Below, one piece after another: positions 20,360-49,488 of a stretch of DNA of 64,000 bases. The DNA lies in IMG/VR virus record IMGVR_UViG_3300042359_000853, positions 62,001 through 126,000 of that record, one strand, 5' to 3'. Numbering within the stretch: position 1 is the stretch's first letter; every line of letters begins with the position of its first letter. Both the position numbers and the translations under genes were made by a program. Under the pieces are notes generated by a model, which worked only from the letters and a program-made list of their open reading frames with translations, was not told where the DNA came from and did no database searches.

Positions 20360-20414
20360 TTTTACCTTCGTTTATATATAAATAGTGAAGGTTGTCATCT
20401 AGGAACGATATCAA

Positions 20415-23400: not shown

Positions 23401-23603
23401 AACCTAGAAATCTCACTAGATAAAAAACTGAAAGATGGCAGTGAATATACTCTCTGAACACCTGCGTTATCTGTTACTTCAACATTCACTGAAGGATCTG
23501 GTGAAGTTGTTAAACTATTCAATTTTGAAAGTAGTTCAACGATATTGTTATTGAACACAACTATTTGTTCAGCTATTGATTGATAAGAACTTTGAAGAGA
23601 CAT
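20415..23603 (-). CDS. large predicted virion structural protein with coiled-coil and FN3-like segments
   Basis: 1062 aa; VVQFRVQYRY...VEFRIKSISEVGWP....SEWS; ATATATA motif upstream. Confidence 0.6.
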   Translation of the reverse strand: MSLQSSYQSIAEQIVVFNNNIVELLSKLNSLTTSPDPSVNVEVTDNAGVQRVYSLPSFSFLSSEISRLNNNINAIYGLDGSGSLVQPSNNSSFRKIVAVEINKEPVDITNLNSVSNFSSSKNWFFDGLLNPQLFVTFDLDGKIDDVVDRCLVRRYIISFEKTASGTLSNNGQLALNSFNLNFRQKTDITQENLLNWMLTTPGVMNPTKPEYDEQVFDLEPNFLLYDGIFTVIKAEEDVLNKRIWYHLNTLDYTNVETSAVLQLSIGDELIVNLAGSSTKYKILEVSLLQSNPRIRVERSQGFDPVPIGFNSLKIHSPIRYTKRLRVSIGYDERCVVFTKAINGSNGIQSKNWSLGSGFWTNDLILSSSDNFNGTPFETFYSGQVYDYGKVLTDLVAKKIPNQFSAALPSPPELSSRNFQVVQINTHLTNQIDSAALKNIYSQNKSLQSEIDQLSKAILEKTTQLQVTRFSTPSDREQWQNEIDRLVSLKETKTQLFRSNLDQITTITNTLKNKDSAKYRVRGFWPLPQPVIVRGTLPQEVVQFRVQYRYLSNDGSESPVQLFKLSSSSTGVGTVRGVFSNWTEYKTDVRKRVYNSSNGEYTWQVEDVSDADTPNINQLDIPIQPNERVEFRIKSISEVGWPESPVESEWSQPLTINFPEDLSTLVVESDFLLKEATKDELKVNILDEFSSRGVDTHLADTVVANDKTFLHKSENILSGFRDDNGIAIDLYSYLQSLENKIKNLESLISRTRSQLSVVLYRNNEEFIVGNGSDLVFNIECEDYALPFTGASLASSSSIPTGRVYANNIYVIKDFLLQFKNTSADSPLGILSSKEYLSGDIYDSRVPQVIWVNDQDELLFSNLKGVSNTQLDYQYLWSVNYNSLTQNLQATKLSDNIGNDFLTVGNNSLTNVLSSNEFNLGYSENALLNFVGDNNSLFDPQKWIDQTETVASETKLLTTCHPSISRLENLVESNAKKIKEITSNSSDWINISLPIYFKLNSLDNVTKTGENYEWINLNNSTRTVKHTKKIKFHLETNQDTRPFVFTVTFNLNRNKVVVRGGGNI

Positions 23604-25146: not shown

Positions 25147-25147
25147 A

Positions 25148-26310: not shown

Positions 26311-26355
26311 ATTTTTTTTATATATACATAAAACAAATAAGTTCTACAACTTAAG

Positions 26356-27603: not shown

Positions 27604-27620
27604 AACTTATATATTGTTTT

Positions 27621-32360: not shown

Positions 32361-32362
32361 TT

Positions 32363-32578
32363 TTATTTTCTTTTAACCCTTAAACTCCAAAGAACATGAT
32401 CTTCTTCTAGATCGACTTTTTCTTTAGCAATAGAAACTTTTGATTTTTTTAAAATATCTTTTATTTCATTTATAAATCTATCGTATTTATAAATGTCCTG
32501 TGTATATTCAGACACTTTAATCTCAAAAGACTCTTCTTCTGAAAAGATGAGTTGGTAGATAAGATCTTCCTTTTTCAA
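32363..32578 (-). CDS. hypothetical protein
   Basis: 71 aa, TTG start, AATATATA 19 nt upstream. Confidence 0.6.
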   Translation of the reverse strand: MKKEDLIYQLIFSEEESFEIKVSEYTQDIYKYDRFINEIKDILKKSKVSIAKEKVDLEEDHVLWSLRVKRK

Positions 32579-32624
32579 GTTAGGTTTTTTTTGTAACTAT
32601 ATATTATTTAAGGTATGTTTGAAC

Positions 32625-33430: not shown

Positions 33431-33829
33431 ATGGAAGAAAAAGATTACAATGAGATGTATCACGATATATCCTTTCCGATGGTTAGGAGAGTGTCTGTGA
33501 AAACACTCAGTCAAGAACTGGCGTTCTATTCAGAAGAAGAAATGCAACTTGTGAAGAGTAAAATATTTTCAGAAAATCGAGATAGAAAAATAGATTCACT
33601 TGTGAACGGGTCTGAGTATGTAGAGGCACGTTTAGAAGATGATCCAAAATATAAAGAGCTTGTTTCTAGAGGAGTTAAACCTATGGGCAAACCAAGTGAT
33701 CAACTCTTCTACTTGGATTACAAATATGACAACAACGACACCACAGATTTGAGTAGTATAATATCAACCGCAGAAAAAAACGAGAACATAAATTTCTTAT
33801 CATTTGTAGATATTTTAGATACAAAGTAG
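33431..33829 (+). CDS. small protein resembling a split fragment of the T4-like major capsid protein
   Basis: FPMVRRVSVKTLSQEL, about 50-aa insert, GVKPMGKPSDQLFYLDYKY. Confidence 0.6.
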   Translation: MEEKDYNEMYHDISFPMVRRVSVKTLSQELAFYSEEEMQLVKSKIFSENRDRKIDSLVNGSEYVEARLEDDPKYKELVSRGVKPMGKPSDQLFYLDYKYDNNDTTDLSSIISTAEKNENINFLSFVDILDTK

Positions 33830-33841
33830 ATGAAAGTTACG

Positions 33842-33849
33842 TATCTTTG
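33842..33849 (+). promoter_or_regulatory. Bacteroidota sigma-A -7 element
   Basis: TATCTTTG followed by an A-tract and ATG 33862. Confidence 0.65.
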
Positions 33850-33861
33850 TAAAAAAAACTT

Positions 33862-34032
33862 ATGAAATACTTATTCTTGTTCCTCTTCTTTATTTCTAGT
33901 TTTATGCTTGGTGCCTACACAACTAGTCAGTTTAAGTTCGATACTCCTGTTGAATCTTACAGATGGGCTTTGACCTCTTTTTGGGGTATTTTTTTCTTGG
34001 TGACATTTCTTAAATATAATCAAAAAAAATAA
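33862..34032 (+). CDS. 56-aa small membrane protein with two hydrophobic segments; absent from the ORF track
   Basis: Own translation MKYLFLFLFFISSFMLGAYTTSQFKFDTPVESYRWALTSFWGIFFLVTFLKYNQKK; stop 1 nt before the next ATG. Confidence 0.75.
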   Translation: MKYLFLFLFFISSFMLGAYTTSQFKFDTPVESYRWALTSFWGIFFLVTFLKYNQKK

Positions 34033-34033
34033 C

Positions 34034-34381
34034 ATGAAAACTGGATATTTACTCTGGCTCGATGACATGAGAAATCCCTTTCTAGCAGATTGGGTTCTAC
34101 AATACGCACCTGATTTCGATGATCGTAAAGAGCAGATTGTTTGGTGTAAGAATTTCCATGATTTCTCGGATTGTATTACTCAAAGAGGTCTTCCCGAAGA
34201 GATTTGCTTTGATCACGATCTCGGTGAAGATTTGACTGGATACGACTGCGCAAAGTGGCTTGTAGATTATCTTTTAAATACTGGTGAAGATTTACCACCT
34301 TTTTCTATACAAAGCCAAAACCCAGTCGGTAGGGAAAATATTATTGGATTATTAAGATCTTTTACTCGATCGAGGGGTTAA
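34034..34381 (+). CDS. cyclic-phosphate-processing receiver-like domain protein
   Basis: LWLDDMRNP, FDHDLG, TGYDCAKWL, S.NPVG.ENI. Confidence 0.8.
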   Translation: MKTGYLLWLDDMRNPFLADWVLQYAPDFDDRKEQIVWCKNFHDFSDCITQRGLPEEICFDHDLGEDLTGYDCAKWLVDYLLNTGEDLPPFSIQSQNPVGRENIIGLLRSFTRSRG

Positions 34382-34405
34382 ATATTTTACTAAATACAGA
34401 AATAG

Positions 34406-34951
34406 ATGATATTTTTTGATAGGTTAAATTGGATATTTTATACAAGTTGGGAAGCGTCTTCCCTGGTTGTTGAACTCAAAGATTTACTTCCTAATACTCG
34501 TTTTTTTGATGCTGCTAACTGGACTAAAATTGATAGCGATCAGGGTAAACTATTCTTTGATTATAGAGATGATTTCACTAGAATAATAAGAGCAATAGAA
34601 GGTTCTAAAGATCGTCCAAGTTATACTTTTATTCTAATAAACCGAATAGATCCAGATTTTTTACCAAAACTGGATTTTTTATTCAAAAGAGATGTGTATG
34701 GAAAAGTAAAATGGGTATTTACCCTTAATACAAGAAGGACTTCACTAAAAGATAACTCTCTAAAAACTGAATACGATTGCTTGAAAATCTTACCACGTTT
34801 AGTAAGTGAAGTTGGAATAAAGTCGGGCAAAAAATTCTTTCATTTAGGACGAGATGATGAAAGTTTTCTTCTGTCAGAAGGTCAAGAAAATATTTATATC
34901 AGGGATCTACAGGCACATGTTAGAGATTACAAGATCTCCTTATTAGAATGA
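34406..34951 (+). CDS. hypothetical protein
   Basis: 181-aa ORF ending RDYKISLLE. Confidence 0.6.
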   Translation: MIFFDRLNWIFYTSWEASSLVVELKDLLPNTRFFDAANWTKIDSDQGKLFFDYRDDFTRIIRAIEGSKDRPSYTFILINRIDPDFLPKLDFLFKRDVYGKVKWVFTLNTRRTSLKDNSLKTEYDCLKILPRLVSEVGIKSGKKFFHLGRDDESFLLSEGQENIYIRDLQAHVRDYKISLLE

Positions 34952-35278
34952 GTTAATGAGATCTCGTAGAACGGCAGCCTTTTCGTAGTTTTCTACATCA
35001 ACTTCTTTTTCTAAGATCAAGTTGAAAATTTTGATCTTCTCACCCTGTGGCATCTTCTCAACAAGTGGAGAATCAATATCAAATATTCTTGTAAGAGCAA
35101 AAATAGGAAATACCTTGCTGATCCAGTTTTCTTGAATAAGATTTTTACCATCAACCGTTGTAGTTGACCAAGAACAGGTCATCTGAAAAGATTTTACAAT
35201 CTTCTCAAACTCTTCAACGGTTGTGATTCTTTTTCCGGTCTCCATTTGGGATAAGAGAGTTTTTAGGCGATCAATCAT
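34943..35278 (-). CDS. protein with a C-terminal UVR (UvrB/UvrC) motif
   Basis: LEKEVDVENYEKAAVLRDLI. Confidence 0.7.
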   Translation of the reverse strand: MIDRLKTLLSQMETGKRITTVEEFEKIVKSFQMTCSWSTTTVDGKNLIQENWISKVFPIFALTRIFDIDSPLVEKMPQGEKIKIFNLILEKEVDVENYEKAAVLRDLINSF

Positions 35279-35315
35279 TTTAGTTATATATTATTTTTAA
35301 AATATAGTTTATCAA

Positions 35316-36026
35316 CTATTGTGCCAAACTTTCATTCGTGACAATTTTTCTTCTCAGGACTTTTAGACAAAAAATTGAATCTACAATATCTTCTATTGGG
35401 TTGGGTATCTTCTCTCTATCCATTAGGTCTTTGTGATGAAAAAGAATGTTGTAAATTGGGGCATCTATTTTGCCATCAATAAACGCCTTAAACATTTGTT
35501 GCTTCTTAAAACTACCACCGGCTATGCCTTGATCATTGACCCATTTCAATTTTTTCTTTTTAACACCTAGTTCAATCGGTGGATAGACAAGTTTACAGGA
35601 TTCGAGCTTAAGAGAGAGTGGTGAAATAATAGACATCTCTATGTCCGGTATTCTGGTGAGTAGTTCTGTTTTTACTAAAGTAGAAAGAGATACAATATCC
35701 AAGATTGAACTAGTGTTTCTAGAAAAAGAGTAACCCTCTATACTACAGAAAGTTTTCATAGTAGGATCGAGATACCTAGTCACCGTATCAACAATATTGT
35801 GTGAAAGTTCACTGAAGTCAAGAAGTTTAAGTATTTCATTACTAGAGTAATCTGATGAAGATTTCCGATACAGATGTGTAAAAATAACACCGGATGATTT
35901 TAACTCATTGATCCAAATGTTGTTATCTTTCTTTGAGGTAAAACTAAGAACTATTTTTTTATCCGATGTTTCAATATAAACCGCAGTGCTATTTAAGCTA
36001 ATATCTATTCCTATAAAATTATACAT
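35316..36026 (-). CDS. RuvC-like Holliday junction resolvase
   Basis: RNase H-fold acidic residues: IGIDISLNSTA, IEGYSF, K..M, DIVDS. Confidence 0.75.
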   Translation of the reverse strand: MYNFIGIDISLNSTAVYIETSDKKIVLSFTSKKDNNIWINELKSSGVIFTHLYRKSSSDYSSNEILKLLDFSELSHNIVDTVTRYLDPTMKTFCSIEGYSFSRNTSSILDIVSLSTLVKTELLTRIPDIEMSIISPLSLKLESCKLVYPPIELGVKKKKLKWVNDQGIAGGSFKKQQMFKAFIDGKIDAPIYNILFHHKDLMDREKIPNPIEDIVDSIFCLKVLRRKIVTNESLAQ

Positions 36027-36048
36027 CTAATTTATATATCTAGAAAGG

Positions 36049-38166
36049 TTAGCCTCTGAAAAATCTTCTACTTCTAGTTCTTGGTTGGATTGGTACTTTT
36101 AATCCCATTGGCTTTGAACCGTAAGTGCTTGCGAACTGTTTATTTCCACCTGAGTAAGTGTCGGACGAAGGTTGGTTAGGTGGTAGTGTTGTTATTGGAA
36201 CTACTTGTGTGGTGGTTGAAGTGGTTGTGGTCACTTCGGGTGATGGAGTTGGTGTAGGTGTGGGTGTAGGTGTTGTTGTGGAAGTTGGTGTGGGTGTGTT
36301 TGTTGGTGTTGGCGTAGAAGTAGAATCTGGTGTCTGAGTAACTGTTGCCGATGGTGTCACTGAAGGAGTTATCGTAGAAGTTGGTGTAGAGCTAGGTGTT
36401 GAGCTTGGTGATGGTTCGTATTGGGGGAGTTGGCCAACCGAATATAGTATAGATCTACCAAGCATTTTACACAAAGTGGATGTATTACTAGTAATCGAAC
36501 CAAACCAAGTATTGATACCAATTAGTTTTGAGCAACCAACTTCCTTTATCGCAAGTAACTTTACTCCACTCGGGGTGTAGGATGCGTGAAGAACCGCACC
36601 GCTGGAAAGAGTTGGATCACCGTTTGTGAAAGGTGTTCCACCAAAAGTTGAATTTAACCCATCTGCAATAGATATAGAAGTAGAAAATGTGAAATTACCT
36701 CCTATTGTTGATTGTGTGTTTGTGGCTAGAAATGGTGTGAGTGATGAGTGTGTAAATCCCGAAGGATAAAGATTCCATAAAAATACTCCAGATATAATAT
36801 GACCACCAGAATTCACAAATTCAAGTAGTGAATTGCCAAGACCAGACGCACCTACTTGACTACCATTGGTGTAAATGAACACAACATCATAACCTGAACT
36901 TGTTAAACCACTTCCGCTATATGTTGTGGACATACTCACAGTAGAGTATGTTATCGAAAATCCTTCTGTGTTAATATAAGAATTAATGTTTGATGCAACA
37001 GTATCTACGTTTGCGTCACCTAAGAATAAAACATTGATGGTACCAGACACAGTTCCACAAATCTCACTGGTGTTCGTAGAAGAAGGTGTTATTGTGGGTG
37101 TAGGTGTATTTGTAGGTGTTTCGGTATTTGTTGGTGTGTTTGTTGGTGTCTGAGTAGGTGTTTCACTCGGTGAGACATCTGGTGTTTCGGTATTTGTTGG
37201 TGTGTTTGTTGGTGTTTCAGTATTTGTAGGTGTATTTGTGGATGTTGGTGTTGGTGTTTCGGTATTTGTGGGTGTATTTGTAGGTGTCTCTGTATTTGTA
37301 GGTGTTGGAGTTTCAGTAGGTGTTTCAGTAGGTGTTTCAGTATTTGTCGGTGTAGGGGTTTCAGTAGGTGTTTCAGTATTTGTAGGTGTGTTTGTGGATG
37401 TTGGTGTTTCAGTATTTGTGGGTGTATTTGTGGGTGTCTCTGTATTTGTAGGTGTATTTGTGGATGTTGGTGTTGGTGTTTCGGTATTTGTAGGTGTATT
37501 TGTAGGTGTCTCTGTATTTGTAGGTGTTGGAGTTTCAGTAGGTGTTTCAGTAGGTGTTTCAGTATTTGTCGGTGTAGGTGTTTCAGTAGGTGTTTCAGTA
37601 TTTGTTGGTGTATTTGTAGGTGTCTCTGTATTTGTAGGTGTTGGTGTTGGTGTGGATAATTCGATATTACCCAAACTAATATAAACTGGGACTCCAAATG
37701 AAAAATCTGAAGAACTGGTTTGGACAATAGTAGCTAGTCCGGATGGTGAGTTTGACGGGGGAACTCCTATATTGCTACCGAAAACAAAACCAGTCCCACT
37801 AGCCGTAAAACTCCACGATTTGAATGATTGTGTGTCACCTGAGTAAATGGCAGTATTACTATATTGTGTGAAACTTATAGTCACACCTTGATTCAAAAAA
37901 CTTTGGAAATACGAACTTCTATCCACACCATCTGCGTCAATACTATTAAAATAAAATCCTCTCCCTGTTAAACCCAGTTCGTTGATTTTAGTGATACCCA
38001 TTGTGGCACCACCTGAACCGTTCATTATAGCATTGCCTGAAGAAGGAAATGTATATGGAAGATCTAGTAATATAAATGGATATCCAGAGTTTGTGACTGG
38101 ACTTGGAGTGGGTGTAGATGTTTCTGTTGGGGTTATGGTGGGTGTTTCTGTGGGTGTCTCGGTCAT
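36049..38166 (-). CDS. mucin-like Thr/Pro-rich protein with two globular domains (the second GATase/flavodoxin-like)
   Basis: Three T/P tracts; VLFLGD...YDVVFIY...[11 protein letters not shown]. Confidence 0.7.
37085..37660 (-). repeat. coding Thr/Pro tandem repeat (TPTNTETP units)
   Basis: Same unit family as 16320-17610, with an internal higher-order duplication. Confidence 0.95.
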
Positions 38167-38179
38167 ATAAATTTAGGAA

Positions 38180-38446
38180 TTATTTTTCTGGAAATCTTTT
38201 TATAATTTCTTTTTCCCTCTCTTTTCTTGATAATCCATCACCTTCCCCTTTTTTAATAGGATTATAAGGAAATTCATCTTTTATTCTCTTTGCTCTCTCT
38301 TCTCTGGTTTCAGAAGGTGACAGGGGAACATTCATAGGTTCATATGGAAAATCATGATACTCAATTTCATTAGAGGGATCTACTCCCATCTCATAATCTG
38401 AGTAATCATCCTCTATCATCGATTCGTAAGTCTTTAAATGCTTCAT
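38180..38446 (-). CDS. hypothetical protein, candidate internal head protein
   Basis: N-terminus MKHLKTYES; ATATATA motif upstream. Confidence 0.6.
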   Translation of the reverse strand: MKHLKTYESMIEDDYSDYEMGVDPSNEIEYHDFPYEPMNVPLSPSETREERAKRIKDEFPYNPIKKGEGDGLSRKEREKEIIKRFPEK

Positions 38447-38516
38447 AAACTTGATTTTTATTTTAATCTATATATATTTTTACTAAATCTTTTTTTGAAA
38501 AAATGATAAAACTTGA

Positions 38517-40220
38517 ATGATTATAGAAGAAATTTCAATACGTGGATATAAATCATTTGGAAATACAGAACAAGTTGTAAAGTTTAATACTGAAGCAGGA
38601 GAACTTATTCTTCTTTGTGGATCGAACGGTTCTGGTAAAAGTTCAATACTTGAGTGTGTAGAATACTCACTTTATGGAAAAGTGAAATCCATGAAAAATA
38701 AAAAATGGACTAAATCATCCCTATTACCAAATAGAATAAACGGTGAGCTTTTGAACAAAATAAAATTTAAATCTTCTGGATCTGAAATCGAAGTTATTCG
38801 TGGGATATCTCCGAATGTTTTGAGAGTTCTTGAAAATGGTCTTGAAATCGATAAAGCTGGTAAAGCTTCACTGGATGAAAGAATAGAAAAACTAGTTGGT
38901 ATTGATATTGAAACTTTCAAGAGTTTTATTTCACTATCTATCAACGATTTTAAGAATTTTATTTCACTCTCGTCTGAGGAAAAGAAACTTCTTTTAGATA
39001 AACTTTTTAACCTTGAAGTAATCAATATTCTATCTGATATCTTGAAGGATCTTAATAAGACCAATAAAATAGGACTCGCTAGATTAGATGCTGAAATAGG
39101 ATCCCTTGCTAGCTCTATACGTTCAATTGATATGTCTATTCAAAAAGCGCTCGAAAGAGAAAAAGAAGATCTTGATCAAGAGATCTCAGTTCTCAATGCT
39201 GAAATAGAAAAAAGAAAAGAAGAGTATAAGTTATTGAAGGAAAAAAAGGATAAAATAGCACTTAAAGAAACTGAGATAAACACACACCTTGATAAAGAGA
39301 AAGAGGAACTCTATAAAATCAGAAATAATTTAAATAATGTCGATCGAGAAATATCACTTTACAACTCAGGAAAGTGTCCCACTTGTAAAGTTTCTTTCGA
39401 TGGTCAATTCTTTGCTGATTTAAGAAATGAACTAGATCAGAAAAAACAAGGTATCCAAAAAATATTAGAGCAGATTACACAAAATATAACTTCTTTGGGA
39501 GAAAAGAAAAAGAAACTTGGAGAATTGACCGTTGATGTAACTACAAACTTCAACGATTTAACTTATTTACTTCGTAACTACAAATCACAAATCGATCAAC
39601 TCACACAGAAAAAAAACTCAGGTTCTACTCAAAGTCATACTACACAAGAGTTTGAGAATACCAAATCAGAACTTCTTTCTAAGATGGATGTTGTATCTGG
39701 TGAAAACGTAATTTTACAAGAAAAAGAAGTTTATTACAAAGAACTTTCTAAAATATTGAGTGAAGATGGTGTTAAAAAAAGTATTATTTCTAAAATCATC
39801 GAACCTATCAATCATTTTGTAGCTGAAAATTTACGTAAAATGAGAATACCATTTCAAGTAGTGTTAGATCAAAACTTCAACGCTGAGATTAAAAACCTAA
39901 ATGAAGTAATTGAACAAGATAGTCTATCGACTGGTGAAAATAAAAGAATCAACATTTGTATTATGATAGCTTATCTGAAAATGATACGAACTAAAAGACA
40001 TATCAATATTCTTTTTCTTGATGAAGTTTTCTCATCGATAGATCTCGAAGGTATTGAGTCTATTTTATTATTACTTAAAGATTTTGCTAACAACTATAAG
40101 ATAAGTATATTTGTAGTTCATCACGCCCTGATGAGTGGTGAGTTTTTTGATAGAATTATCAGTGTGAATAAAGATGTTTTTTCACAAATAACCGAAACTT
40201 CTACCCAGGAGATCCAATAA
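38517..40220 (+). CDS. gp46/SbcC/Rad50-like recombination ATPase
   Basis: YKSFGN, GSNGSGKS, coiled coil with CPTC zinc hook, LSTGE signature, LFLDE, H-loop. Confidence 0.9.
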   Translation: MIIEEISIRGYKSFGNTEQVVKFNTEAGELILLCGSNGSGKSSILECVEYSLYGKVKSMKNKKWTKSSLLPNRINGELLNKIKFKSSGSEIEVIRGISPNVLRVLENGLEIDKAGKASLDERIEKLVGIDIETFKSFISLSINDFKNFISLSSEEKKLLLDKLFNLEVINILSDILKDLNKTNKIGLARLDAEIGSLASSIRSIDMSIQKALEREKEDLDQEISVLNAEIEKRKEEYKLLKEKKDKIALKETEINTHLDKEKEELYKIRNNLNNVDREISLYNSGKCPTCKVSFDGQFFADLRNELDQKKQGIQKILEQITQNITSLGEKKKKLGELTVDVTTNFNDLTYLLRNYKSQIDQLTQKKNSGSTQSHTTQEFENTKSELLSKMDVVSGENVILQEKEVYYKELSKILSEDGVKKSIISKIIEPINHFVAENLRKMRIPFQVVLDQNFNAEIKNLNEVIEQDSLSTGENKRINICIMIAYLKMIRTKRHINILFLDEVFSSIDLEGIESILLLLKDFANNYKISIFVVHHALMSGEFFDRIISVNKDVFSQITETSTQEIQ

Positions 40221-40223
40221 AAG

Positions 40224-40230
40224 ATATATA
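40224..40230 (+). promoter_or_regulatory. ATATATA putative phage late promoter (example upstream of bS21; about 20 copies in the window)
   Basis: Recurs before starts at 14489, 20359, 23603, 25453, 26310, 27603, 32578, 33344, 35278, 36026, 38446, 40235, 45658, 48478, 49450, 50643, 54421, 57787, 60659 and 63585. Confidence 0.75.
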
Positions 40231-40234
40231 AGTT

Positions 40235-40426
40235 ATGATTAAAGTAGAACTAGGTAAAGACCCAATAGATAAAGCTCTGAAAATATTCAAGAGAAAATTT
40301 GATAGAGTGGGAGTTATTAAAGAACTCAGAAATAGAAAAGAGTTCAAGAAAAAATCAGTTGTTCGTAGAGAAGAGATCAGAAAAGCTATCTATGTTGAGA
40401 AAAACTTCTTATCACCAAAAGATTAA
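40235..40426 (+). CDS. rpsU: ribosomal protein bS21 (phage-encoded)
   Basis: IDKALK.FKRK....GVIKELR.R.EF.K.SV.RR.E..KAIY. Confidence 0.92.
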   Translation: MIKVELGKDPIDKALKIFKRKFDRVGVIKELRNRKEFKKKSVVRREEIRKAIYVEKNFLSPKD

Positions 40427-40442
40427 TTCGCATAAATAGAGT

Positions 40443-41168
40443 ATGGATTTAGAAAAAAACTATTACCAGATACTTGGTGTGGATAAAGATGCTACGTCTG
40501 ACGAAATTAAAAAAAAATATTATAAACTATCTAAAAAACTACACCCAGATGTTGGTGGAGATAGTAATCTATTCTCACAGATAAACGAAGCCTACGAAAT
40601 TTTCAGTAACGAAAAGCTAAGAAAAGATTGGGATAAAAGAAGTCGTTTTGGTAAAAACTATAAACTTGTAAATGAGTTTAAAAACTATGAACAAACTATA
40701 TTATCAAAAACTTGGGAGAAGGGTAAGTTCGATAAGATCAAATCTGAAACAGATCTACATATACATCTAGAAGTTGAAAAAAATTTTGGAGGTGTTGTAG
40801 AATATCAAAGATGGGTTACTTGTAAATCTTGTAAAGGAACCGGTCTAGATCTCAGAGGAAAAATAGTTATCAAGGATGAAAATGGTAATATACTAAGACA
40901 ATTTGAAAACGAAGATGGTTGTGATTTCTGTGAAGGAACTGGTAAGGATTGGAGAGATGAGGTATGTAGTTTTTGTGAAGGCAAAGGAAAAACTGGATCA
41001 ATCATTTGTGGTGACTGTCAAGGTAAAAGAAGAATCCTAGGTAATCAAAAGTTAGAAAAAATAAAGTTCCCAAAAGGTGAAAAGTTTCTAAAAATTGAAT
41101 CGATGGGTAATATATCTGTTACTTCTCAAGGTAAATCAGGACATCTTTTTCTAATAAAGAAAAGTTAA
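40443..41168 (+). CDS. dnaJ: truncated DnaJ-like co-chaperone (J domain and zinc finger)
   Basis: YYQILGV, HPD motif, four CxxCxGxG-type repeats; no G/F region or full C-terminal domain. Confidence 0.85.
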   Translation: MDLEKNYYQILGVDKDATSDEIKKKYYKLSKKLHPDVGGDSNLFSQINEAYEIFSNEKLRKDWDKRSRFGKNYKLVNEFKNYEQTILSKTWEKGKFDKIKSETDLHIHLEVEKNFGGVVEYQRWVTCKSCKGTGLDLRGKIVIKDENGNILRQFENEDGCDFCEGTGKDWRDEVCSFCEGKGKTGSIICGDCQGKRRILGNQKLEKIKFPKGEKFLKIESMGNISVTSQGKSGHLFLIKKS

Positions 41169-41170
41169 TT

Positions 41171-44100
41171 CTATCTGTAAATCTGAACATTTCCTATGAA
41201 ATCAAAATCTAGACGACTATAATCAATTCTTGGGGCAATAGCTTTAGTAGGTGATTTCATAAACCTATCAATTCTATCAGTTCCTGATGAGTCCAAATAG
41301 TAATTAAAAAACGGAATTCTATCAACTTCATAGAAATTTATTCGAGAAAAATAGATTTGAGAAGAGGGTGAAGACCAACCCGAATCGAAATCCGATCCAC
41401 CCAATATAGAAAAGTCAAGTTTTTCTAAATTGAAGAAGTATTCCCTTTTAACACTCGAAGTATAAGACAGATGATCAACTGGTGTAGATAAAAGATTGGG
41501 TAGATTATCTATAGGCTTATTATTCAGATATATTCTGGGATATTTGTTTGAAGAAGTTCCGAAGTTCATAAAATCCACAACACTTGAACCTGAGTGTGTA
41601 TAAACCTCAAACTCTACAAGAGAATATCTTTCTCTAGATATAGTTGAATTTTTATTTGAAAAGTTCCAAGAAGAAAAACCAGAACCAGAAGCGGACGCCG
41701 ACGTTTCTACAAGTAATAAGTTAGAGAAATCAGGATCCGTGATGTTATAGTTAGATGTAAATGTAGCTGATTGAAGATTGAAAATATTATTCATGGAATA
41801 TGAATATGTCCAGCCCCTTGAGAAAAACTCTAATAAATTAGAGGTGTTTGATAATTGTGGCACCCCATTTTTAATATTTGTTACATAATTAAATTGTCCA
41901 GATTGAGATATTTTAGAAACTACGGGTGAGAATTTTTTTCCTAGACTATAGCTTGATACACTAGTATTTGAAATATTCCTAATATTTGCTGAGATTCTTA
42001 AAATATTATCGGTCGTATAAGAAGTGTGGTTTAAGTATTTAATAGATTTATCGAAAAATTCCGAAAAATAGTTTAGGTTATCGTAGGTATTTGTTCTTTG
42101 AGACTGATTCCATGAAAGATTAATCCATGAGTTATATCTTCTGTTTCTAGCACCAATCATACGCAAAGGCGTTTTGTATAGAGAAGAATAGTTAGGATCG
42201 ATTTTATCGGGTTGTACAAGATATGATCCATCAGAAAACTTCAAACTCTGAATGAGACATTTATCTTGACCAGAATCTGAAATCTGACCACCTTCAAAAA
42301 CACCATCTACAAGATGTGTAGATTCCATAAGTAAATTCTCGGGATATCCATTGATTAGTCCATAGATCATAATTCCCGAAAAATATCCATTTAGGAATGC
42401 TCCACTTAGCCAAACATTTTTGGATACTTTTATCGGATGATCTTGTGAATCTTTTACTATACTACGAAGTGGTGTGTTCGACACAAATTCAACCCTTATG
42501 AATTCTGAACTTTTTTCCAAGATAGTTGCTGAAGATTTAATAAGAGTGAATTCTTGATTAACGTCAATTCCCGCAATATTAGAAATACTCACCTTTTCAC
42601 CTACAGTAAAGTTTTTGCTATTTTCACCTTCTATTCTTAACGTGTATGTGAATTGACTTGTTTGTATAAAGTTTGAACAGCTACTAAAAGTCCACGAATG
42701 TTCATCTCCTCTCCAACCATTATTCCATACTCCATTCTCCCAAATACCTTTTTCAAAAACACCATTACCAAAATTCATTCTCACAACTGAACCATTATCA
42801 GAGGGTGTGTTATAACTTGTGTTTGGTAAATCAGAAAATGCCAGTGTTGGTGCAGTAGATGTAGAAGAATTCGTAAGTTTATTATTATAGACTTGGTTAT
42901 AGTTTGATATAATTTTATGAATTGAGATATTCGTGATTTCAACCCCAGCAAAGAAACCCGGATTGAAATTGTAAGCTTGAATAATTAAATCTTTATCGTC
43001 AGAAATTTTTGGAGAATAATCAAAAATATAATCTGTTAGTGTATTATTCAAATGTATTAAAGGTGTTCCAATACTATAATCGGTAGCTATTGGTGTTGTT
43101 GATAATGGTGAGAAAGCAGGAAAATTCCCTGACCAATATCCAGGTTCACCACTACTTGGTAGTATTTCTGATTGAGTGAAAGAACCAATCTTAGCAAATA
43201 AATAAACATTAGTTGGATCGGTAGGGTTTGTAACACTTCTATAGCATCTAGCTGTTATTGTTATACGGTAGGTGAAACTTGTATCTCTAAAAACATTTCT
43301 AGATATTTGACAAGAAGTGTCATTACATTCCCATACTTGTGGGATAAGATGCTCTGAAAATTGTAGAGGTAAGAATGTTCCGGTTGGTATAAGAGCTGAA
43401 GATGATAAAGTCCAATCAGTTAAAGATGCGTTGGACGTTTGTGTATAGTATTCCGTGGAAGATGGATTAAATCCAAAATTCACTATTTCGGTTGAATTCA
43501 CAGAAAAAGATCCAACGTTCATATAGTGAACCTTATCCCACATACTGGATGTAGAAGATATAAAACTATTCACTCTTTTAAGATAGATGGAAGTTTTTTC
43601 TTCTAGAGCAGGTGACGGACTTGTGAATGGTGTTCCGTTCCAGTTACCGTTTCTCCATCTACCACCTTTCCACAAGATATTGTTAGCGAATCCATATTCC
43701 CAAACACCCGTGTGCCATATTCCCGCTGTCATTGTTCCAGATTGGAACACACCATCTTGCCACTCTGAGATATAGAAGTGACTATCAATGAAATTACCTC
43801 CTTTCCAAATACAACTTTGTGTTAAATTGAAAGATAAAGCGGAAGTTTCATTCTCTACCAGGCCTACGCGATTCACCCATGGGTTAAAGCTAGAGTTTCT
43901 GAAGTTACCTTTAACAAATCTACCTTGTAGCCACAAAGAATTGAAAATAACACCCACATCATGACTGAATGTTCCATCGACCCATAGCATATTTTGAAAA
44001 TTTGCTCTTGATAGGTTTCTAACCTCTGAAGAAATATTTAATGGTGTAAAGATATCTCTATCGGTAGTTCCCATGTTAGAATTATCGATAACTAATCCGT

Positions 44101-45658
44101 TTTTCCATAATCCCCAGTAACTACCTGTAAAATAATTTCTTGCCGCTTGCTCATCTGATAAAACAGATGATGTATAACCACCTATAAAATCGCCGTTGTA
44201 GAACTTTCCACTATTCCAGATCTTACCCTTAAATACACCACCCCAGAACTCTCCATCCCACCAACTAGAGTTTGTTAATCCATCACCTGAACCAAAAACT
44301 CCAGAATTGAAACGGCCTCCCTGCCAACCAAAATGATTTGAAGCAGTCATCGCGGATCCAAGACCCCAAGTTGAGTTGAAAGACCCGTTATTAAAATTTC
44401 CACCTTGCCAAATAACATTCCCGTTTATTCTTCCTGAGTTGAAAATGCCGTTTTTCCAAGTAGTATAAAATCCACTATCACCTCTTACTTCACCTGAGTT
44501 GAAGTTACCACCTAACCACTCAACAAAACTTGAACCACCAATAACACCATTTTTAACAACACCGTTTATCCAAGTTGAAGAAGTTCTCCCGTATCCAGTT
44601 GTGTTTAAAATAGTTCCAAAAGATGTTTGGTTAGCTTTGAGGTTTTCAGAACCGAGCGATCCATCAGAAAAAGTACCACTTAGCCACACAGATTCGTAGA
44701 AGTTACCTGATGAAAATTTCCCATCTATCCAGAGTGATTTTTCGAAATCACCCGAAAGAAAGTTACCATTATACCAAGCTTTCCAAAGATTATTAAAAGA
44801 CAGAGAAGTAGATGAGTAAGTATAACTAGATAAGAATCTACCAGAAAAAGTTCCAGAAACCCAGGTAGAATTGTTAAAAACTCCGGATAGAAATTCGGTG
44901 TTCTTCCAAATAGAACTGTTCACTAACCCACTGATAAAATTACCTGAAGTAACAATAGATTTATGTAATGTTGTTTGAATAAAATTGTTTGTTTTAGAAA
45001 GAATAGTATTTGAAATTCTTAGCTTGGAAATCTTCTCTCTATCATTTATTGGTAAATCCTCTTGTTCAGAATTGAAATCATTTGATTCGAACAGAGCTCT
45101 TTTGTAAAAACCAGAGTAGATTTTTGAATTTTTTATTTGTAATTTATTGAGTGTGAAAATTTCTGGTTGAATAAAGTTATCAAAACTAAAAGTAGATGAG
45201 CTAGTCAGACCAGAAAGAGCACCACTTTGTGTGTAGGGTTGGATATTTATATTCTTTGAAACTGGTAGATTACCAAGTGTTTGTGTTAATAGAGAATTAA
45301 TCTTATAAGTTCCAGAAATATCTTTACTTTGAGTTCCTCCAAATAAAGTTCCTATGAATAATACTCCTTTAGAAAAGTTTTCCAAACCATATGATGAGGT
45401 AACACTCAAAAATTTAGCATTTAATGTAGAATTCGAGTTAAGTGTTATGGTGAATTCAGTCGGATTATTATTATCAATTCTAGCTGATGATTCTTGTATA
45501 TAACTCAAATTTCTAATACGACAACTATCTACAACACCACTTATAGGATTTGACTTACCGATTGTGGATCCTGTGTATAGTATTTTAGCTGTTTGTTGAT
45601 TAATTAAACCATCAGCGTTTGGAAATACCGCATTATTATTGAGAACGAATATAGACAT
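41171..45658 (-). CDS. very large predicted virion protein with long Trp-Gly pentapeptide repeats
   Basis: 1495 aa; GxWxx/GxFxx arrays; AATATATA 6 nt upstream. Confidence 0.7.
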   Translation of the reverse strand: MSIFVLNNNAVFPNADGLINQQTAKILYTGSTIGKSNPISGVVDSCRIRNLSYIQESSARIDNNNPTEFTITLNSNSTLNAKFLSVTSSYGLENFSKGVLFIGTLFGGTQSKDISGTYKINSLLTQTLGNLPVSKNINIQPYTQSGALSGLTSSSTFSFDNFIQPEIFTLNKLQIKNSKIYSGFYKRALFESNDFNSEQEDLPINDREKISKLRISNTILSKTNNFIQTTLHKSIVTSGNFISGLVNSSIWKNTEFLSGVFNNSTWVSGTFSGRFLSSYTYSSTSLSFNNLWKAWYNGNFLSGDFEKSLWIDGKFSSGNFYESVWLSGTFSDGSLGSENLKANQTSFGTILNTTGYGRTSSTWINGVVKNGVIGGSSFVEWLGGNFNSGEVRGDSGFYTTWKNGIFNSGRINGNVIWQGGNFNNGSFNSTWGLGSAMTASNHFGWQGGRFNSGVFGSGDGLTNSSWWDGEFWGGVFKGKIWNSGKFYNGDFIGGYTSSVLSDEQAARNYFTGSYWGLWKNGLVIDNSNMGTTDRDIFTPLNISSEVRNLSRANFQNMLWVDGTFSHDVGVIFNSLWLQGRFVKGNFRNSSFNPWVNRVGLVENETSALSFNLTQSCIWKGGNFIDSHFYISEWQDGVFQSGTMTAGIWHTGVWEYGFANNILWKGGRWRNGNWNGTPFTSPSPALEEKTSIYLKRVNSFISSTSSMWDKVHYMNVGSFSVNSTEIVNFGFNPSSTEYYTQTSNASLTDWTLSSSALIPTGTFLPLQFSEHLIPQVWECNDTSCQISRNVFRDTSFTYRITITARCYRSVTNPTDPTNVYLFAKIGSFTQSEILPSSGEPGYWSGNFPAFSPLSTTPIATDYSIGTPLIHLNNTLTDYIFDYSPKISDDKDLIIQAYNFNPGFFAGVEITNISIHKIISNYNQVYNNKLTNSSTSTAPTLAFSDLPNTSYNTPSDNGSVVRMNFGNGVFEKGIWENGVWNNGWRGDEHSWTFSSCSNFIQTSQFTYTLRIEGENSKNFTVGEKVSISNIAGIDVNQEFTLIKSSATILEKSSEFIRVEFVSNTPLRSIVKDSQDHPIKVSKNVWLSGAFLNGYFSGIMIYGLINGYPENLLMESTHLVDGVFEGGQISDSGQDKCLIQSLKFSDGSYLVQPDKIDPNYSSLYKTPLRMIGARNRRYNSWINLSWNQSQRTNTYDNLNYFSEFFDKSIKYLNHTSYTTDNILRISANIRNISNTSVSSYSLGKKFSPVVSKISQSGQFNYVTNIKNGVPQLSNTSNLLEFFSRGWTYSYSMNNIFNLQSATFTSNYNITDPDFSNLLLVETSASASGSGFSSWNFSNKNSTISRERYSLVEFEVYTHSGSSVVDFMNFGTSSNKYPRIYLNNKPIDNLPNLLSTPVDHLSYTSSVKREYFFNLEKLDFSILGGSDFDSGWSSPSSQIYFSRINFYEVDRIPFFNYYLDSSGTDRIDRFMKSPTKAIAPRIDYSRLDFDFIGNVQIYR
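43630..44960 (-). repeat. protein-level GxWxx/GxFxx pentapeptide repeat
   Basis: e.g. WQDGVFQSGTMTAGIWHTGVWEYG...WKGGRWRNGNWNG. Confidence 0.85.
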
Positions 45659-45696
45659 TTAATCTATATATTAGAATTTTTAGATCTTTAAGAAAT

Positions 45697-46383
45697 TTAA
45701 TAATTTTTTATATCTTCGAATTCGCTCTCTGATAAGCCTAAAAAAGTAGAAATATCCAATTTCGGTTTGATGAACTCTTTCTTTGCGTTCAAAATTCTTC
45801 TTATGACTTTATCTGGATGTTGTAGATTTGAATAATCAAGTAAAACAAGGTGATTATTTGTAAGTGAGGTTGTAAGATGAAACATATGACTAGACTTTCT
45901 AAAATCAAAAATTATTTCATCATCACAAGATTTTTTATGATAGTAACTAATTTTAATAACTTTATTATCTGGTTTGAGGTAGAACCACTGGTCAATTTCT
46001 CTACTTGAATTGAAAACTTCTAATTCTTTTCTTGTTGGCATTTGATATTCATCCTCTCTAAGGCTTAAATCAAGTAGAAGTGAATATTCTGTAAGTGAAA
46101 TATAATTCAATTTATTGAAGTCGTTCTCAACATCATTCCAATCTATATTTGAAATATTTCTTTTTAGTCCAAGATCTAAATCCCATGTTGGAATATCCTT
46201 CCAAATGAAACTTCCATAAAGATAACAGAGTTCATATTTATCTAAAATAGATTTTACAGAAGAATTAGATAAAAAATTTTTAACAGAGCCAAAACTCGGT
46301 CTTAACCAAGGTTTATTTGTTTTTATACTACCAATTTGGTAAAAAAAACTACAATCCTCACTATAATAGAAATCTTTTCCCAT
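45697..46383 (-). CDS. putative Pol-beta-superfamily nucleotidyltransferase
   Basis: YLYGSF...TWDLDL (GS-DxD signature) and a later LLDL acidic residue. Confidence 0.55.
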   Translation of the reverse strand: MGKDFYYSEDCSFFYQIGSIKTNKPWLRPSFGSVKNFLSNSSVKSILDKYELCYLYGSFIWKDIPTWDLDLGLKRNISNIDWNDVENDFNKLNYISLTEYSLLLDLSLREDEYQMPTRKELEVFNSSREIDQWFYLKPDNKVIKISYYHKKSCDDEIIFDFRKSSHMFHLTTSLTNNHLVLLDYSNLQHPDKVIRRILNAKKEFIKPKLDISTFLGLSESEFEDIKNY

Positions 46384-46399
46384 CGGGAATTAAGATTTT

Positions 46400-48478
46400 C
46401 TATAGACTACCTCCTCCACCACCGCCAGATAGAGTAGTAGTAGAAGTAGTAGTCGGCCAAAGACATTGAGTTCCGCTTATTTCAACAAAACTTCTTGTAT
46501 AAGTCCCACAAGTATAAGAAAGTGCAGGAGAACATGCAGGAAAGTAAATACTTCCCGGTGTTGAACACACCGAATAGGTATAAGAACCCGAAATTCTTTG
46601 GATAGGTGGTTGGTTCTGAAGTGGTGTTCTAGCACAAAAATCATACCCCCAAGCTGTTGATTGGCTACTGAAAGTTGGACTCAAGAGAACTTCAAAATAG
46701 GTAAGATTTCTTACCTCAGATGCCCATCTTGGTGTGCTACTTATACTAAATACCGATCCATTATCTATTGTTAGATTTAAGTTTAAAGTTGCATTCGGTA
46801 AACTTGTTGCTTGAAGTCGAACAACCATAAGTAAGTCGCCAACCTCACCTTGATTCAAAGTTTGACTATAGTTCGATTCTGTAAAATTGAAAGACTGGTT
46901 AGAAACATTTGTGTCAAAAGTTTTTTCTTGGTATCCATAGAAGAAGTTTCTGTTTGAAAGTGGAATTACTTGTATAGTGAATTGATCGACCCCACTACTT
47001 GAGGTTATACTGAAGGAACCAGAAATATTCCAACTAAACGTATAACCACCCGAAGATGGAAATGAGTAGGTAGATCCAGACCAATTAGTCTGTGCTGGTG
47101 GATGGCCAAATTTGAGTCTATATCTCTGTGAATAAATTTCTGTGATTGGATCTCCAATATTATAACTTATATCGAAAGAGGTATTATTTTCCGGAGATCC
47201 ACCACTACTAGTTGCATATACTGTTAAAACCTGACCTGATTGACATACCGATGATGAATAGGTGGCTGCTATTAGATTGCTGTTTTTGGATATCTCAACA
47301 TAAACCTTATCGCCTTGGAGAAGTGAATAGGTCGAAAACCCAAGTTGAATACTCATAGTTCCTGTGTAATTTTGAGCATCATTATAATACAAAGTCCAAG
47401 ATGATGAATCAAGTAAAGAAACAACACCTCCACTATTTTTTTGGAGTTTAGCAATCAAAGAATTTGTAGCATTTCCAGCAGCTATATAGGAACTTTCGAT
47501 TTCACTCTGAATATAGTAAACGCCTGCAGTTCCGGCTGTATAGATAGAATTAGTTGAAGACATGAAATTACCAAATGGTCCGGTGTAAAGAATAGATGAA
47601 GCTGAACCACCAACAAAATTATTGACTAATGTTCCTTGAGAAATGTTAAAATTTACTGTTGCCGTGGCAGTAGTAATACCAACTGAACATGTACTTGGCA
47701 TTGCGATAAGTGTTGCTTGTTCATTTACCAAAAAGTTTGTTGGAACAAGCATTTGATCTATTAGAAAACCACTACTACATTCAAGATATCTAAATACATT
47801 TTGTTCGGTGGAAGTTACTCTAATTCGAGTACAACCGATCGATTGAGTAGCGCAGTCACAACTACAACTAGGTCCAGGATTTGTTACGGTCTCACTAAGA
47901 AAGTAATTTGACCATGAACCAGAATTAATCAACTGGGAACCAGTTCCAGAAATTAAATATACATTTTGTATTGGATCTTTCAAGCAAATAACTTTTTGAT
48001 TTCCCCAATATTGAGTTAGTAGTGAAGAAAAGGTAGCAGAATTATCACAACATGAGTTGAATATAACGTTTATTGGATTTTTAGTTGTAGTGGGAGTTCC
48101 AGTAGTAGTTGAGGTTGTTGTAGTAGAACACGATGGGAAAGCTTGCGATCCTTTTGTAACCGTTAGCCATCCGTCATCACCAGGTGTGTAATCGAGCACT
48201 ATAAAAATTTGTCCATCTGAAATTCTTTGAACATAAACAACAGGTTCAAAACCATAAGAAGGTAAGTTTGAAAATGTATAGATAGGATCCGTTCCTGGAT
48301 CCCATCCTGGTGCCCCATCTAATCTTATTGTGGTATTACTCCCACCACAACAGTTAGTATATTGAAGATAGTATTTATAGGTTGACGTAGGATATGTTGT
48401 TAGAATACTTGTTGAAGTATCGATACTATCCCTATATAGTGTTACGTTATAATTATCACACTGAAGAACTAAAGCCAT
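46400..48478 (-). CDS. Cys/Thr-rich predicted virion protein with two C1q-like domains
   Basis: Cys modules; poly-Thr runs; YTAGTAGVYYI...LQGDKVYVE and YSFPSSGGYTF...LNQGE. Confidence 0.6.
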   Translation of the reverse strand: MALVLQCDNYNVTLYRDSIDTSTSILTTYPTSTYKYYLQYTNCCGGSNTTIRLDGAPGWDPGTDPIYTFSNLPSYGFEPVVYVQRISDGQIFIVLDYTPGDDGWLTVTKGSQAFPSCSTTTTSTTTGTPTTTKNPINVIFNSCCDNSATFSSLLTQYWGNQKVICLKDPIQNVYLISGTGSQLINSGSWSNYFLSETVTNPGPSCSCDCATQSIGCTRIRVTSTEQNVFRYLECSSGFLIDQMLVPTNFLVNEQATLIAMPSTCSVGITTATATVNFNISQGTLVNNFVGGSASSILYTGPFGNFMSSTNSIYTAGTAGVYYIQSEIESSYIAAGNATNSLIAKLQKNSGGVVSLLDSSSWTLYYNDAQNYTGTMSIQLGFSTYSLLQGDKVYVEISKNSNLIAATYSSSVCQSGQVLTVYATSSGGSPENNTSFDISYNIGDPITEIYSQRYRLKFGHPPAQTNWSGSTYSFPSSGGYTFSWNISGSFSITSSSGVDQFTIQVIPLSNRNFFYGYQEKTFDTNVSNQSFNFTESNYSQTLNQGEVGDLLMVVRLQATSLPNATLNLNLTIDNGSVFSISSTPRWASEVRNLTYFEVLLSPTFSSQSTAWGYDFCARTPLQNQPPIQRISGSYTYSVCSTPGSIYFPACSPALSYTCGTYTRSFVEISGTQCLWPTTTSTTTLSGGGGGGSL

Positions 48479-48526
48479 TTAATTTTTTTTTTTTCTTTAT
48501 ATATATTTTTTCTTGATTACCAGAAA

Positions 48527-49456
48527 CTAAGAAATAATATAAGTGAAACAATCAAAAGGACAATCTTCGGGTCTAACCGGTGGTTGAGTTGTAGTTCTTA
48601 CTACTGGACTAGGTGCTACCACCGGAACCTGTGATCCTATCACGGTATCCTGGTTAGGATAAGTTTCAACCCAAAACTTTTTATCCCAGGTTGATTTGAA
48701 AATATTAAAATCCCATGTAGTATAACCAAACTCATCAAGTGATGGATATATTGAACGATAACTCGGATTATTTCTAAGTTTTAATAGGTTCGATCTTCGG
48801 TTTACTTTTGATATTATAGTTTGTCTTGTTTTGCCGAAATTAGTAAGTTCTGGTAGAAATCTGTAGTTTTTATTGTCAAAAAGTTCAATCGTATGAAATA
48901 TAGGACTATACTCACCCGAGTGCCTATAAATAGTGTTTGATGTGATATTTTTAACACCAAAATAAGAATCGATTCTGAGTGGTTCATTTCTATTTTGCTT
49001 TATAGTAGTAAAAGTAGGAGTAGATAAGGAGGACCAATTGAGTTGTTTTATACCATCAATCCTATTTGAATTCAATTTTTTTGTTGGAGTGAGAATATTG
49101 GGTGGTAGAAAATTAGCTTCACGTATTAGAGAATTCGATTTCATTTTTAGTTCGTCCGGAAATCCCGCTCTCAAAATATAGGGTAGATTGACTAAATCTT
49201 GACCTGAAAACCTTTGTATAGAACCATCTTCTTCAATAATAACATATTCCAAAGGCTCGGAGAATCCCCAATCTCCTAGTGGATTGTTTATTGCGTTGAT
49301 AAAATTTAGAGCTGTGACATCAGAAAACGAACGATTATACATATCGTCTCGATTGATGTTTTTAACCTCTAAACTCGTATCACTAACTTCAATACGAACT
49401 AAAACATTCTTAAACTTTTTATTGATATAAATCTTTATACCACCTTCCATAGCCAT
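48527..49456 (-). CDS. predicted structural protein, possibly the detached C-terminal part of 16385-20359; start may be ATG 49450
   Basis: 309-aa ORF; the ATATATA motif overlaps the first ATG. Confidence 0.55.
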   Translation of the reverse strand: MAMEGGIKIYINKKFKNVLVRIEVSDTSLEVKNINRDDMYNRSFSDVTALNFINAINNPLGDWGFSEPLEYVIIEEDGSIQRFSGQDLVNLPYILRAGFPDELKMKSNSLIREANFLPPNILTPTKKLNSNRIDGIKQLNWSSLSTPTFTTIKQNRNEPLRIDSYFGVKNITSNTIYRHSGEYSPIFHTIELFDNKNYRFLPELTNFGKTRQTIISKVNRRSNLLKLRNNPSYRSIYPSLDEFGYTTWDFNIFKSTWDKKFWVETYPNQDTVIGSQVPVVAPSPVVRTTTQPPVRPEDCPFDCFTYIIS

Positions 49457-49488
49457 ATATATAAATTATGGCTACAACCAGTTACAAT

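Follow-up and report, generated by a model that had tools for sequence, protein, structure and literature searches.

Can one large phage protein be encoded as two genes that lie 28 kb apart, and if so, in what order did its parts come to be broken and separated? This question is raised by a stretch of DNA of 64,000 nucleotides (positions 62,001 to 126,000 of IMG/VR virus record IMGVR_UViG_3300042359_000853; hereafter the window), in which two open reading frames (ORFs) on the minus strand, P0001 (the N-part) and P0005 (the C-part), had been proposed in an initial annotation to be the halves of a split structural gene. The window has a GC content of ~33% and originates from an IMG/VR virus contig of 95 kb with a CheckV completeness of 17%; its phage, described as a freshwater huge phage, is seen in lake-water metagenomes. 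Both ORFs are present as described, at 1324 and 309 amino acids (aa), and they are separated by 28,168 nt from ORF to ORF and by 29,097 nt from start to start, in line with the ~29 kb originally estimated. An alternative genetic code is neither used nor needed.

Both ORFs match the two ends of the same single-chain proteins

We compared the two ORFs with phage records by tblastn. Both matched the same records, those of the huge uncultured phages LR745206 (634 kb), LR756502 (642 kb) and LR756501/3 (735 kb), in colinear, non-overlapping positions close together, and in each record the homologous region was a single ORF (1331, 1408 and 1341 aa, respectively). In BLASTP comparisons, residues 1-733 of P0001 aligned with residues 1-771 of P0002 (40% identity, E = 5e-163) and 1-752 of P0003 (40%, E = 4e-172), while residues 2-264 of P0005 aligned with residues 1026-1300 of P0002 (38%, E = 4e-52) and 1104-1374 of P0003 (40%, E = 2e-56). 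One ORF thus matches the N-terminal and the other the C-terminal portion of one and the same set of subject proteins; neither matched an unrelated protein, and in the great majority of relatives the gene is single.

An exhaustive phmmer search with P0005 yielded 235 representatives, and about 75 of those with at least 900 aa hold both cores in one chain, with the N core first and the C core last. Some 70 representatives place the length of the single-chain relatives at ~1,100-1,900 residues. A word search with the N-part of a relative returned 410 matches, mostly of 1250-1400 aa and all annotated as ‘hypothetical protein’. PAU gp265-like proteins are recognized by an N-terminal core of ~735 aa with an (M)KSF..LRTN box, a C-terminal core of ~265 aa with GI.IYINKK, SIYP..DEFGY and F.FKS.WD boxes, and the presence of both cores in one polypeptide. 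P0001 carries the first core with its box. P0005 carries the second, beginning with GGIKIYINKK and containing SIYPSLDEFGY and FKSTWD, and the C-terminal pattern quoted for this ORF in the initial annotation is indeed the real C-terminus of full-length relatives. The two cores do not occur in one polypeptide in the window or in two further contigs with the same split, G001 and G002. All 19 invariant columns of the N-core alignment (A3) are retained in the N-part, and all 8 of the C-core alignment (A2) in the C-part. Together, these comparisons confirm the observation behind the initial annotation and support the interpretation of the window gene pair as the split form of a PAU gp265-like protein.

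The break falls at the module-insertion loop of the family

The homology of the N-part to its relatives ends at residue 733, where Cys-rich and then Thr/Pro sequence follows, which agrees with the abrupt switch noticed earlier near residue 740; residues 1-733 contain 3 Cys, residues 734-887 contain 8, and residues 888-1324 are 70% Thr+Pro. We asked what occupies this position in single chains, using the 70 fused representatives for which both junction ends were defined. The stretch between the cores measured 3-34 aa in 11 of them and 198-654 aa in the other 59. Precomputed Pfam annotation identifies this middle stretch as CBM_5_12 in many fused relatives, and a family profile compared with the sequences of solved structures matched the chitin-binding domains of chitin oligosaccharide deacetylases (E = 8e-4) with the middle stretch only. 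An AlphaFold model of the minimal fused relative P0110 (1092 aa) reached a mean predicted local distance difference test score (pLDDT) of 83.3 and a predicted template modelling score (pTM) of 0.87, with low pLDDT exactly around the junction. Judged by its position between the aligned cores, the break sits at the usual insertion loop of the family, the carrier of CBM_5_12-like repeats in most relatives. Pfam detected no such repeats (PF02839-type) in either window ORF, and residues 734-890 of the N-part had no phmmer match to relatives.

The initial annotation had further suggested that fission freed new termini which were then used to attach mucin stalks. This describes one of the two termini: the new C-terminus of the N-part bears a stalk, but the new N-terminus of the C-part is bare and starts at the core. 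Nor was the attachment point new, as the break site already held modules in 59 of the 70 fused representatives. Because the insertion site predates the break, fission would have left an already existing internal display site at a free terminus rather than created a new point of attachment.

Fission appears to have preceded dispersal

Three further lineages carry the split with the halves still adjacent: L018/L019 (two samples; N-part of 810 aa, C-part of 293 aa starting 16 nt past the stop), L026/L027 (a 594-kb contig; 805 and 293 aa) and L028 (728 and 284 aa, with the Cys domain frameshifted). The gene order in L018, L026 and L028 is the upstream neighbor of the family (‘A’), the N-part, a T-run and small Cys domain, a stop, a short TATATA-type spacer, the C-part and a conserved gene of ~220 aa. 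These orthologues share with the window the break point, the T-run and Cys domain on the N-part end, the TATATA-type spacer and membership of the same clade (support 100); they differ from it in that their halves are adjacent, with a spacer of 16-30 nt after the Cys domain, and in that they have neither the long Thr/Pro stalk nor the ORF resembling LamG domains described below. Identity between L018 and the window is 58% for A, 49% for the N-part (core) and 50% for the C-part; the C-part core is 50% identical to P0006. In L028, the Cys domain (8079-8378) lies after the T-run in a different frame from the N-part, which points to a frameshift or, alternatively, to misassembly of the T-run.

In a tree of the concatenated cores, the window, L028, L018 and L026 formed one clade (Shimodaira-Hasegawa-like approximate likelihood ratio test support, SH-aLRT, 100) nested among 66 fused forms, and trees of the N core and the C core alone agreed on this clade with support of 100 and 99. 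The root of the core tree was not inferred, and fused forms stand on both sides of the split clade; by this placement the fused state is taken as ancestral and the split state as derived. Since the split clade is nested in fused forms and three of its lineages have adjacent halves, fission came first and dispersal later, and the simplest history is a single fission in the ancestor that these lineages share, with dispersal confined to the line leading to the window phage.

The locus itself points to the same order. Protein synteny with LR745206 showed that window positions 33431..49456 are colinear with the side ending in the C core and positions 16385..23603 with the side beginning with the N core, and this two-sided synteny implies a rearrangement breakpoint between the halves. 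The genomes of the window phage and LR745206 are otherwise much rearranged relative to each other. The N-part has kept the family position downstream of A (~1060 aa), which the C-part has lost. The conserved downstream gene (227 aa) was not found in contigs G000, G001 or G002. Where the relatives have this gene of ~220 aa, the window has a 692-aa Cys/Thr-rich ORF (46400-48478, minus strand) directly downstream of the C-part. An M28 peptidase gene beside the C-part was considered as a clue to synteny and set aside, for it is not the M28 gene found near the cluster of the relatives. Between the two colinear sides, window positions 24589-33344 display extensive small-scale rearrangement and inversion relative to LR745206 278-309 kb, and in this region replication and repair genes, for SbcC-like, UvsX-like, RuvC-like, PhoH and Lon-like protease proteins, are interleaved with those for large repeat-bearing proteins.

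The split has been maintained across lineages that are ~50% diverged. This persistence, together with the retained invariant residues, indicates that both parts have been kept by selection.

A further break was observed in L029, a member of the LR745206 clade and of a cluster of 12 member sequences. Here a single in-frame TAA just past the N core is followed by an ATG 10 codons on (3760-3795 of ENA ERZ27246748 contig), giving ORFs of 764 and 576 aa, the second comprising the CBM middle and the C core. By its placement this break is independent of that in the window clade; it looks like the first step of a fission and shows that the loop tolerates breakage. One other candidate split, P0034 (L020), was rejected, as its upstream frame is open and it is a contig-end fragment. 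We tentatively raise the possibility, doubtful as it stands, that the loop between the cores is a recurrent evolutionary break point, passing from a fused gene through an in-frame TAA with an ATG 10 codons on (L029) and adjacent genes that each have a motif of their own (L018, L026, L028) to dispersed genes (the window). Breaks at the loop would then be selected, as a freed display site could carry long terminal stalk-and-lectin appendages impossible for a closed loop. An in-frame TAA with a nearby ATG, as in L029 and at the junction of stalk and LamG-like ORF in the window, could also mark regulated readthrough or termination-reinitiation, yielding both joined and separate products.

The two products are predicted to reassemble

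We next examined whether the separated cores could still form one structure. Complex prediction for residues 1-735 of the N-part with residues 1-265 of the C-part gave ipSAE interface scores of 0.90, 0.90 and 0.88, compared with 0.00 for the best of 3 controls; the mark applied to this score is reached by 58 of 80 solved complexes and by 2 of 110 mismatched pairs. Contact agreement across the runs was at least 88%, and partner pLDDT at least 74. The multimer prediction proposed as a check in the initial annotation therefore came out in favor, with clean controls. The predicted interface comprises ~540 contacts, in which N-part residues 721-731 pair with C-part residues 15-25 in a beta-sheet shared across the break, with further contacts from N-terminal residues to the C-part; the invariant residues that form the interface are conserved. 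Modelled alone, the C-part reached a pTM of 0.57, against 0.87 for the fused relative P0110.

Table 1. Features of the split locus in the window
Feature	Position	Strand	Description
N-part ORF (P0001)	16385..20359	-	1324 aa
N-part core	18161..20359	-	residues 1-733; homologous to residues 1 to ~750 of single-chain relatives
Cys-rich segment	17699..18160	-	residues 734-887 (154 aa), 8 Cys; after the break point
Thr/Pro stalk	16388..17698	-	residues 888-1324 (437 aa), 70% T+P, imperfect tandem repeats; identified by composition
TAA ending the N-part ORF	16385..16387	-	within the T/P repeat; repeat and frame run on past the TAA
LamG/ConA-like ORF	15557..16345	-	262 aa; in frame with the N-part, begins 13 codons after the TAA
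C-part ORF (P0005)	48527..49456	-	309 aa
C-part core	48662..49456	-	residues 1-265; homologous to the last ~270 residues of single-chain relatives
C-part Pro/Thr/Cys tail	48530..48661	-	residues 266-309 (44 aa); predicted disordered
TTATATATA motif	49456..49464	-	abuts the first C-part ATG
Same motif	20372..20381	-	12-21 nt upstream of the N-part start
Upstream neighbor A (phrog_29329)	20415..23603	-	1062 aa; always directly before the N end of the family gene
T(3-6)-S-TTT linker	17606-17629, 36208-36231, 46433-46453, 48101-48124, 55355-55381, 56204-56269, 59946-59972	-	peptide linker

Appendages on the freed end

At the full length of the window ORFs, Pfam returned no family match for either, and among PHROGs only the repeat tail of the N-part ORF matched. 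The Cys-rich segment that follows the break (residues 734-887) had no Pfam match, no phmmer match among the family representatives and no paralogue in the window, and similarity could be detected neither between the appended segments of the window and of L018 nor between these segments and the CBM inserts. The stalk after it is a long, low-complexity Thr/Pro repeat of the type found in mucin-like stalks. The term ‘mucin’ implies O-glycosylation, and the stalk may be glycosylated. A spike in GC skew at 16-18 kb lies over the stalk region.

Nowhere else in the window does a single stop stand between two open frames that are each at least 150 codons long, as the TAA ending the N-part ORF does, and this TAA is identical in G001. 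The LamG-like ORF beyond it matched Pfam Laminin_G_3 (PF13385; E = 2.9e-4) with 21.5 bits, under the cut-off of 27.6, and also matched the C-terminal ends of phrog_8510 (‘virion structural protein’) and phrog_24074; from its frame and position, this ORF was probably once the distal end of the stalk. The short Pro/Thr/Cys tail reported for the small ORF is also present, being rich in Pro/Thr with 2 Cys, and sits on the old C-terminus, where fused relatives too have variable tails.

The 8 copies of a peptide linker of the form T(3-6)-S-TTT in the window are spread over at least 5 large proteins, and L018, L026 and L028 have this linker as well. Its codons differ between copies, so it is conserved as a peptide and not as a DNA repeat. 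The window encodes two further large proteins with Thr/Pro stalks, one of 1110 aa with DUF285 repeats (54455-57787, minus strand; E = 8e-37) and one of 705 aa with a T/P run at its start (36049-38166, minus strand), and GC-skew spikes lie over all three stalk regions.

A shared motif upstream of both parts

Each part has its own start and stop, with a TATATATA motif before both, and the ATATATA motif that had been ascribed to the small ORF proved to be TTATATATA placed directly at its ATG. Against an expectation of 2.1, the window contains 8 copies of this 9-mer, a count reached in 0 of 100 shuffles. TATATA lies no more than 60 nt upstream of 18 of 45 ORFs, including both halves, and of none of the 15 ORFs in the first 14 kb. 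The TATATATA-type motif ranges from 14.4 to 61.8 kb and is often 5-27 nt from the start codon, and in L018, L026 and L028 a motif of this kind makes up the short spacer ahead of the C-part gene. By its distribution, the motif is a putative phage-specific, perhaps late, promoter-like or initiation element common to many genes at 14-62 kb, from which the two parts might be expressed late and independently of each other. RNA runs cover small shares of the locus, and a scan for sigma-70 promoters and terminators was uninformative. In alignments it is the second Met of P0005 that lines up with the first residue of the C-parts of L018, L026 and L028, and the second ATG, at 49450, may accordingly be the true start of the window C-part.

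Neighborhood and likely role of the family

In a comparison with BFVD, the model of a fused relative matched ‘Gp265 [uncultured marine phage]’ (A0A8D9C9T5; template modelling (TM) score 0.84) as well as proteins of phages PTm1, pT24 and PAU, all of them uncharacterised, with E-values of 1e-17 to 1e-19 for PTm1 and PAU. The PTm1 homologue lies between neck-protein and portal genes, and the PAU homologue near a baseplate gene. A search of the literature available to us returned no functional or proteomic data on PAU gp265 or PTm1 ORF-295, and an Atlas feature search with the N core gave scores of at most 0.80, which we treat as leads only. Foldseek searches against the Protein Data Bank (PDB) produced no match at E ≤0.001; clostridial neurotoxin chains appeared as the top rows for the large model (E ≥0.02, TM 0.04-0.06) and were treated as noise, with no claim of a toxin. 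Given the gene neighborhood in PTm1 and PAU and the sugar-binding inserts, the role we favor, by a modest degree, is that of an exposed virion protein with an adhesive module, and it is from such context that the split gene may be labelled ‘structural’. The lectin-type modules at the break site point to binding of the host surface or of particles, and they offer a hypothesis for a family found in hundreds of uncultivated huge phages.

A PDB sequence search with neighbor A found nothing. In the window, A adjoins a sigma-70-like gene (23972-24592, plus strand) that is 63% identical to its LR745206 counterpart and also stands beside A in L026.

Weighing the explanations

We consider the following account probable. 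An ancestral single gene of the PAU gp265-like family of huge and jumbo phages would have broken at the surface loop between its ~735- and ~265-residue parts, once, in the common ancestor of a freshwater clade that includes the window phage, L018, L026 and L028, giving two adjacent genes. The C-part gene would have gained its own TATATATA-type upstream element, and in the window phage alone a later rearrangement with its breakpoint between the genes would have set them 28 kb apart. The two products, made separately, would restore the ancestral fold without a covalent link, as the final N-part strand pairs with the opening strands of the C-part. The freed C-terminus would now bear an adhesin-like appendage consisting of the Cys-rich segment, the Thr/Pro stalk of 437 aa and a LamG-like lectin domain that, at least in the past, formed its distal end.

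An assembly chimera, that is, a misjoin in repeat-rich DNA, might be suspected, given that the N-part runs into a 1.3-kb repeat where short-read unitigs break and that contigs G000, G001 and G002 may share one lake series and one assembler. However, the break points (~18160 and 49456) fall in unique sequence outside the repeat, and the three assemblies concur: G001 (227,583 bp) and G002 (110,211 bp), both further IMG/VR contigs, have the same split with the same spacing, and G001, the one compared at the DNA level, is identical base by base in the 12 kb compared around the two genes (6.5 kb and 5.5 kb). Furthermore, 14 lake-water runs (2020-2025) contain positions 48300-49700, and with them the C-part junction, completely, and independent relatives found in other samples show a stop, a spacer and a start at these same boundaries, which leaves a chimera a highly improbable origin of the split. 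If the ORFs were instead decaying pseudogene pieces, their function lost or supplied by an intact paralogue in unsampled genome, the small sampled share of the genome and the stop codon that also cuts the stalk before the LamG-like ORF would be readily accommodated. We nevertheless regard decay as very unlikely: every family-invariant residue is present in both parts, the parts are as close to the fused orthologues (38-40%) as those are among themselves, the same split in ~50% diverged lineages would require long purifying selection on both genes, and an intact single-chain copy was not found in the 227 kb of G001.

The halves could also have become independent proteins that no longer associate, for instance the N-part a stalk-bearing adhesin and the C-part something else. 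Genes 28 kb apart are no longer one transcription unit, and the appendages vary between lineages, both of which would suit such a course; the predicted interface and sheet with their clean controls, the poorer model of the C-part by itself and the conservation of the interface residues speak against it, and we judge it unlikely. Finally, dispersed halves of one protein are a hallmark of split-intein genes such as cyanobacterial dnaE, and the window arrangement recalls them, which brings to mind a split intein, or RNA trans-splicing, as a means of rejoining the halves once they are expressed. To this we assign almost no likelihood. The C-part starts 2-4 residues before the GGI..IYINKK box, leaving no room for a C-terminal intein segment (IntC), the N-part continues for 590 residues of Cys-rich and T/P sequence to its stop, and a Pfam scan gave no intein or Hint match; the bare C-part start and the lack of such matches led us to exclude a split intein.

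Several points nonetheless weigh against fission followed by dispersal and reassembly, or against the role ascribed to the protein. Neither core matches Pfam or PHROG. There is no solved fold relative (best Foldseek hit against PDB for the C-part and fused-relative models, E 0.02 with TM <0.1), and the highest Z in a wide VIA search was 3.0 with the C-part model and 3.8 with that of the whole protein. The assignment as a virion surface protein draws on the PTm1/PAU neighborhood and the lectin-type modules. Association of the products is a matter of prediction, and the complex score partly reflects the fused fold and our own alignments. The motif lies 0-5 nt from the C-part ATG, a distance that fits either a promoter with a leaderless mRNA or an initiation element. 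The sampled share of the window-phage genome is 17-39%, so that an intact second copy may sit elsewhere, and coverage by unique Logan contigs ends at 16375, leaving the TAA ten bases beyond their reach.

Comparison with known systems

The closest counterparts of the window pair are the PAU gp265-like proteins themselves, namely Sphingomonas phage PAU gp265, Tenacibaculum phage PTm1 ORF-295 and the LR745206, LR756502 and LR756501 orthologues. Both cores are homologous to theirs and the upstream neighbor is the same, but these proteins are single chains, whereas the window encodes two genes 28 kb apart; sequence similarity to PAU, PTm1 and Lak is limited to the first ~280-320 residues. A 309-aa ORF that would otherwise pass as an orphan in annotation is in this way assigned to a large protein conserved across huge phages, within which the forms described here make up an unusually complete natural series of gene fission: single chain, nonsense-broken, adjacent and dispersed by 28 kb. 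The series marks where the protein tolerates breaks and insertions, and, for recombinant work on a family whose 1,300-aa chain is difficult to express, the two halves offer a naturally divided construct.

Phage genes in pieces are known. The topoisomerase of T4 is encoded as gp39 and gp60, which are one gene in T2/T6, nrdA of Aeromonas phage Aeh1 is split by a homing endonuclease gene, and gene 43 is split in some T4-like phages. In these cases, likewise, one ancestral gene is present as two cistrons whose products reassemble non-covalently. They concern enzymes, however, with halves that are adjacent or parted by one mobile gene, while the window pair probably encodes a structural protein, is broken at a module-insertion loop and has its halves 28 kb apart with no mobile element seen at the break. 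Cyanobacterial split-intein dnaE likewise has its halves far apart on the genome, but the window lacks intein halves and its reassembly would be non-covalent. The pair is thus a well-documented new instance of known gene fission and not a new kind of system; what distinguishes it is that the halves are dispersed and that a loop used for display within the chain has become a free end bearing a stalk.

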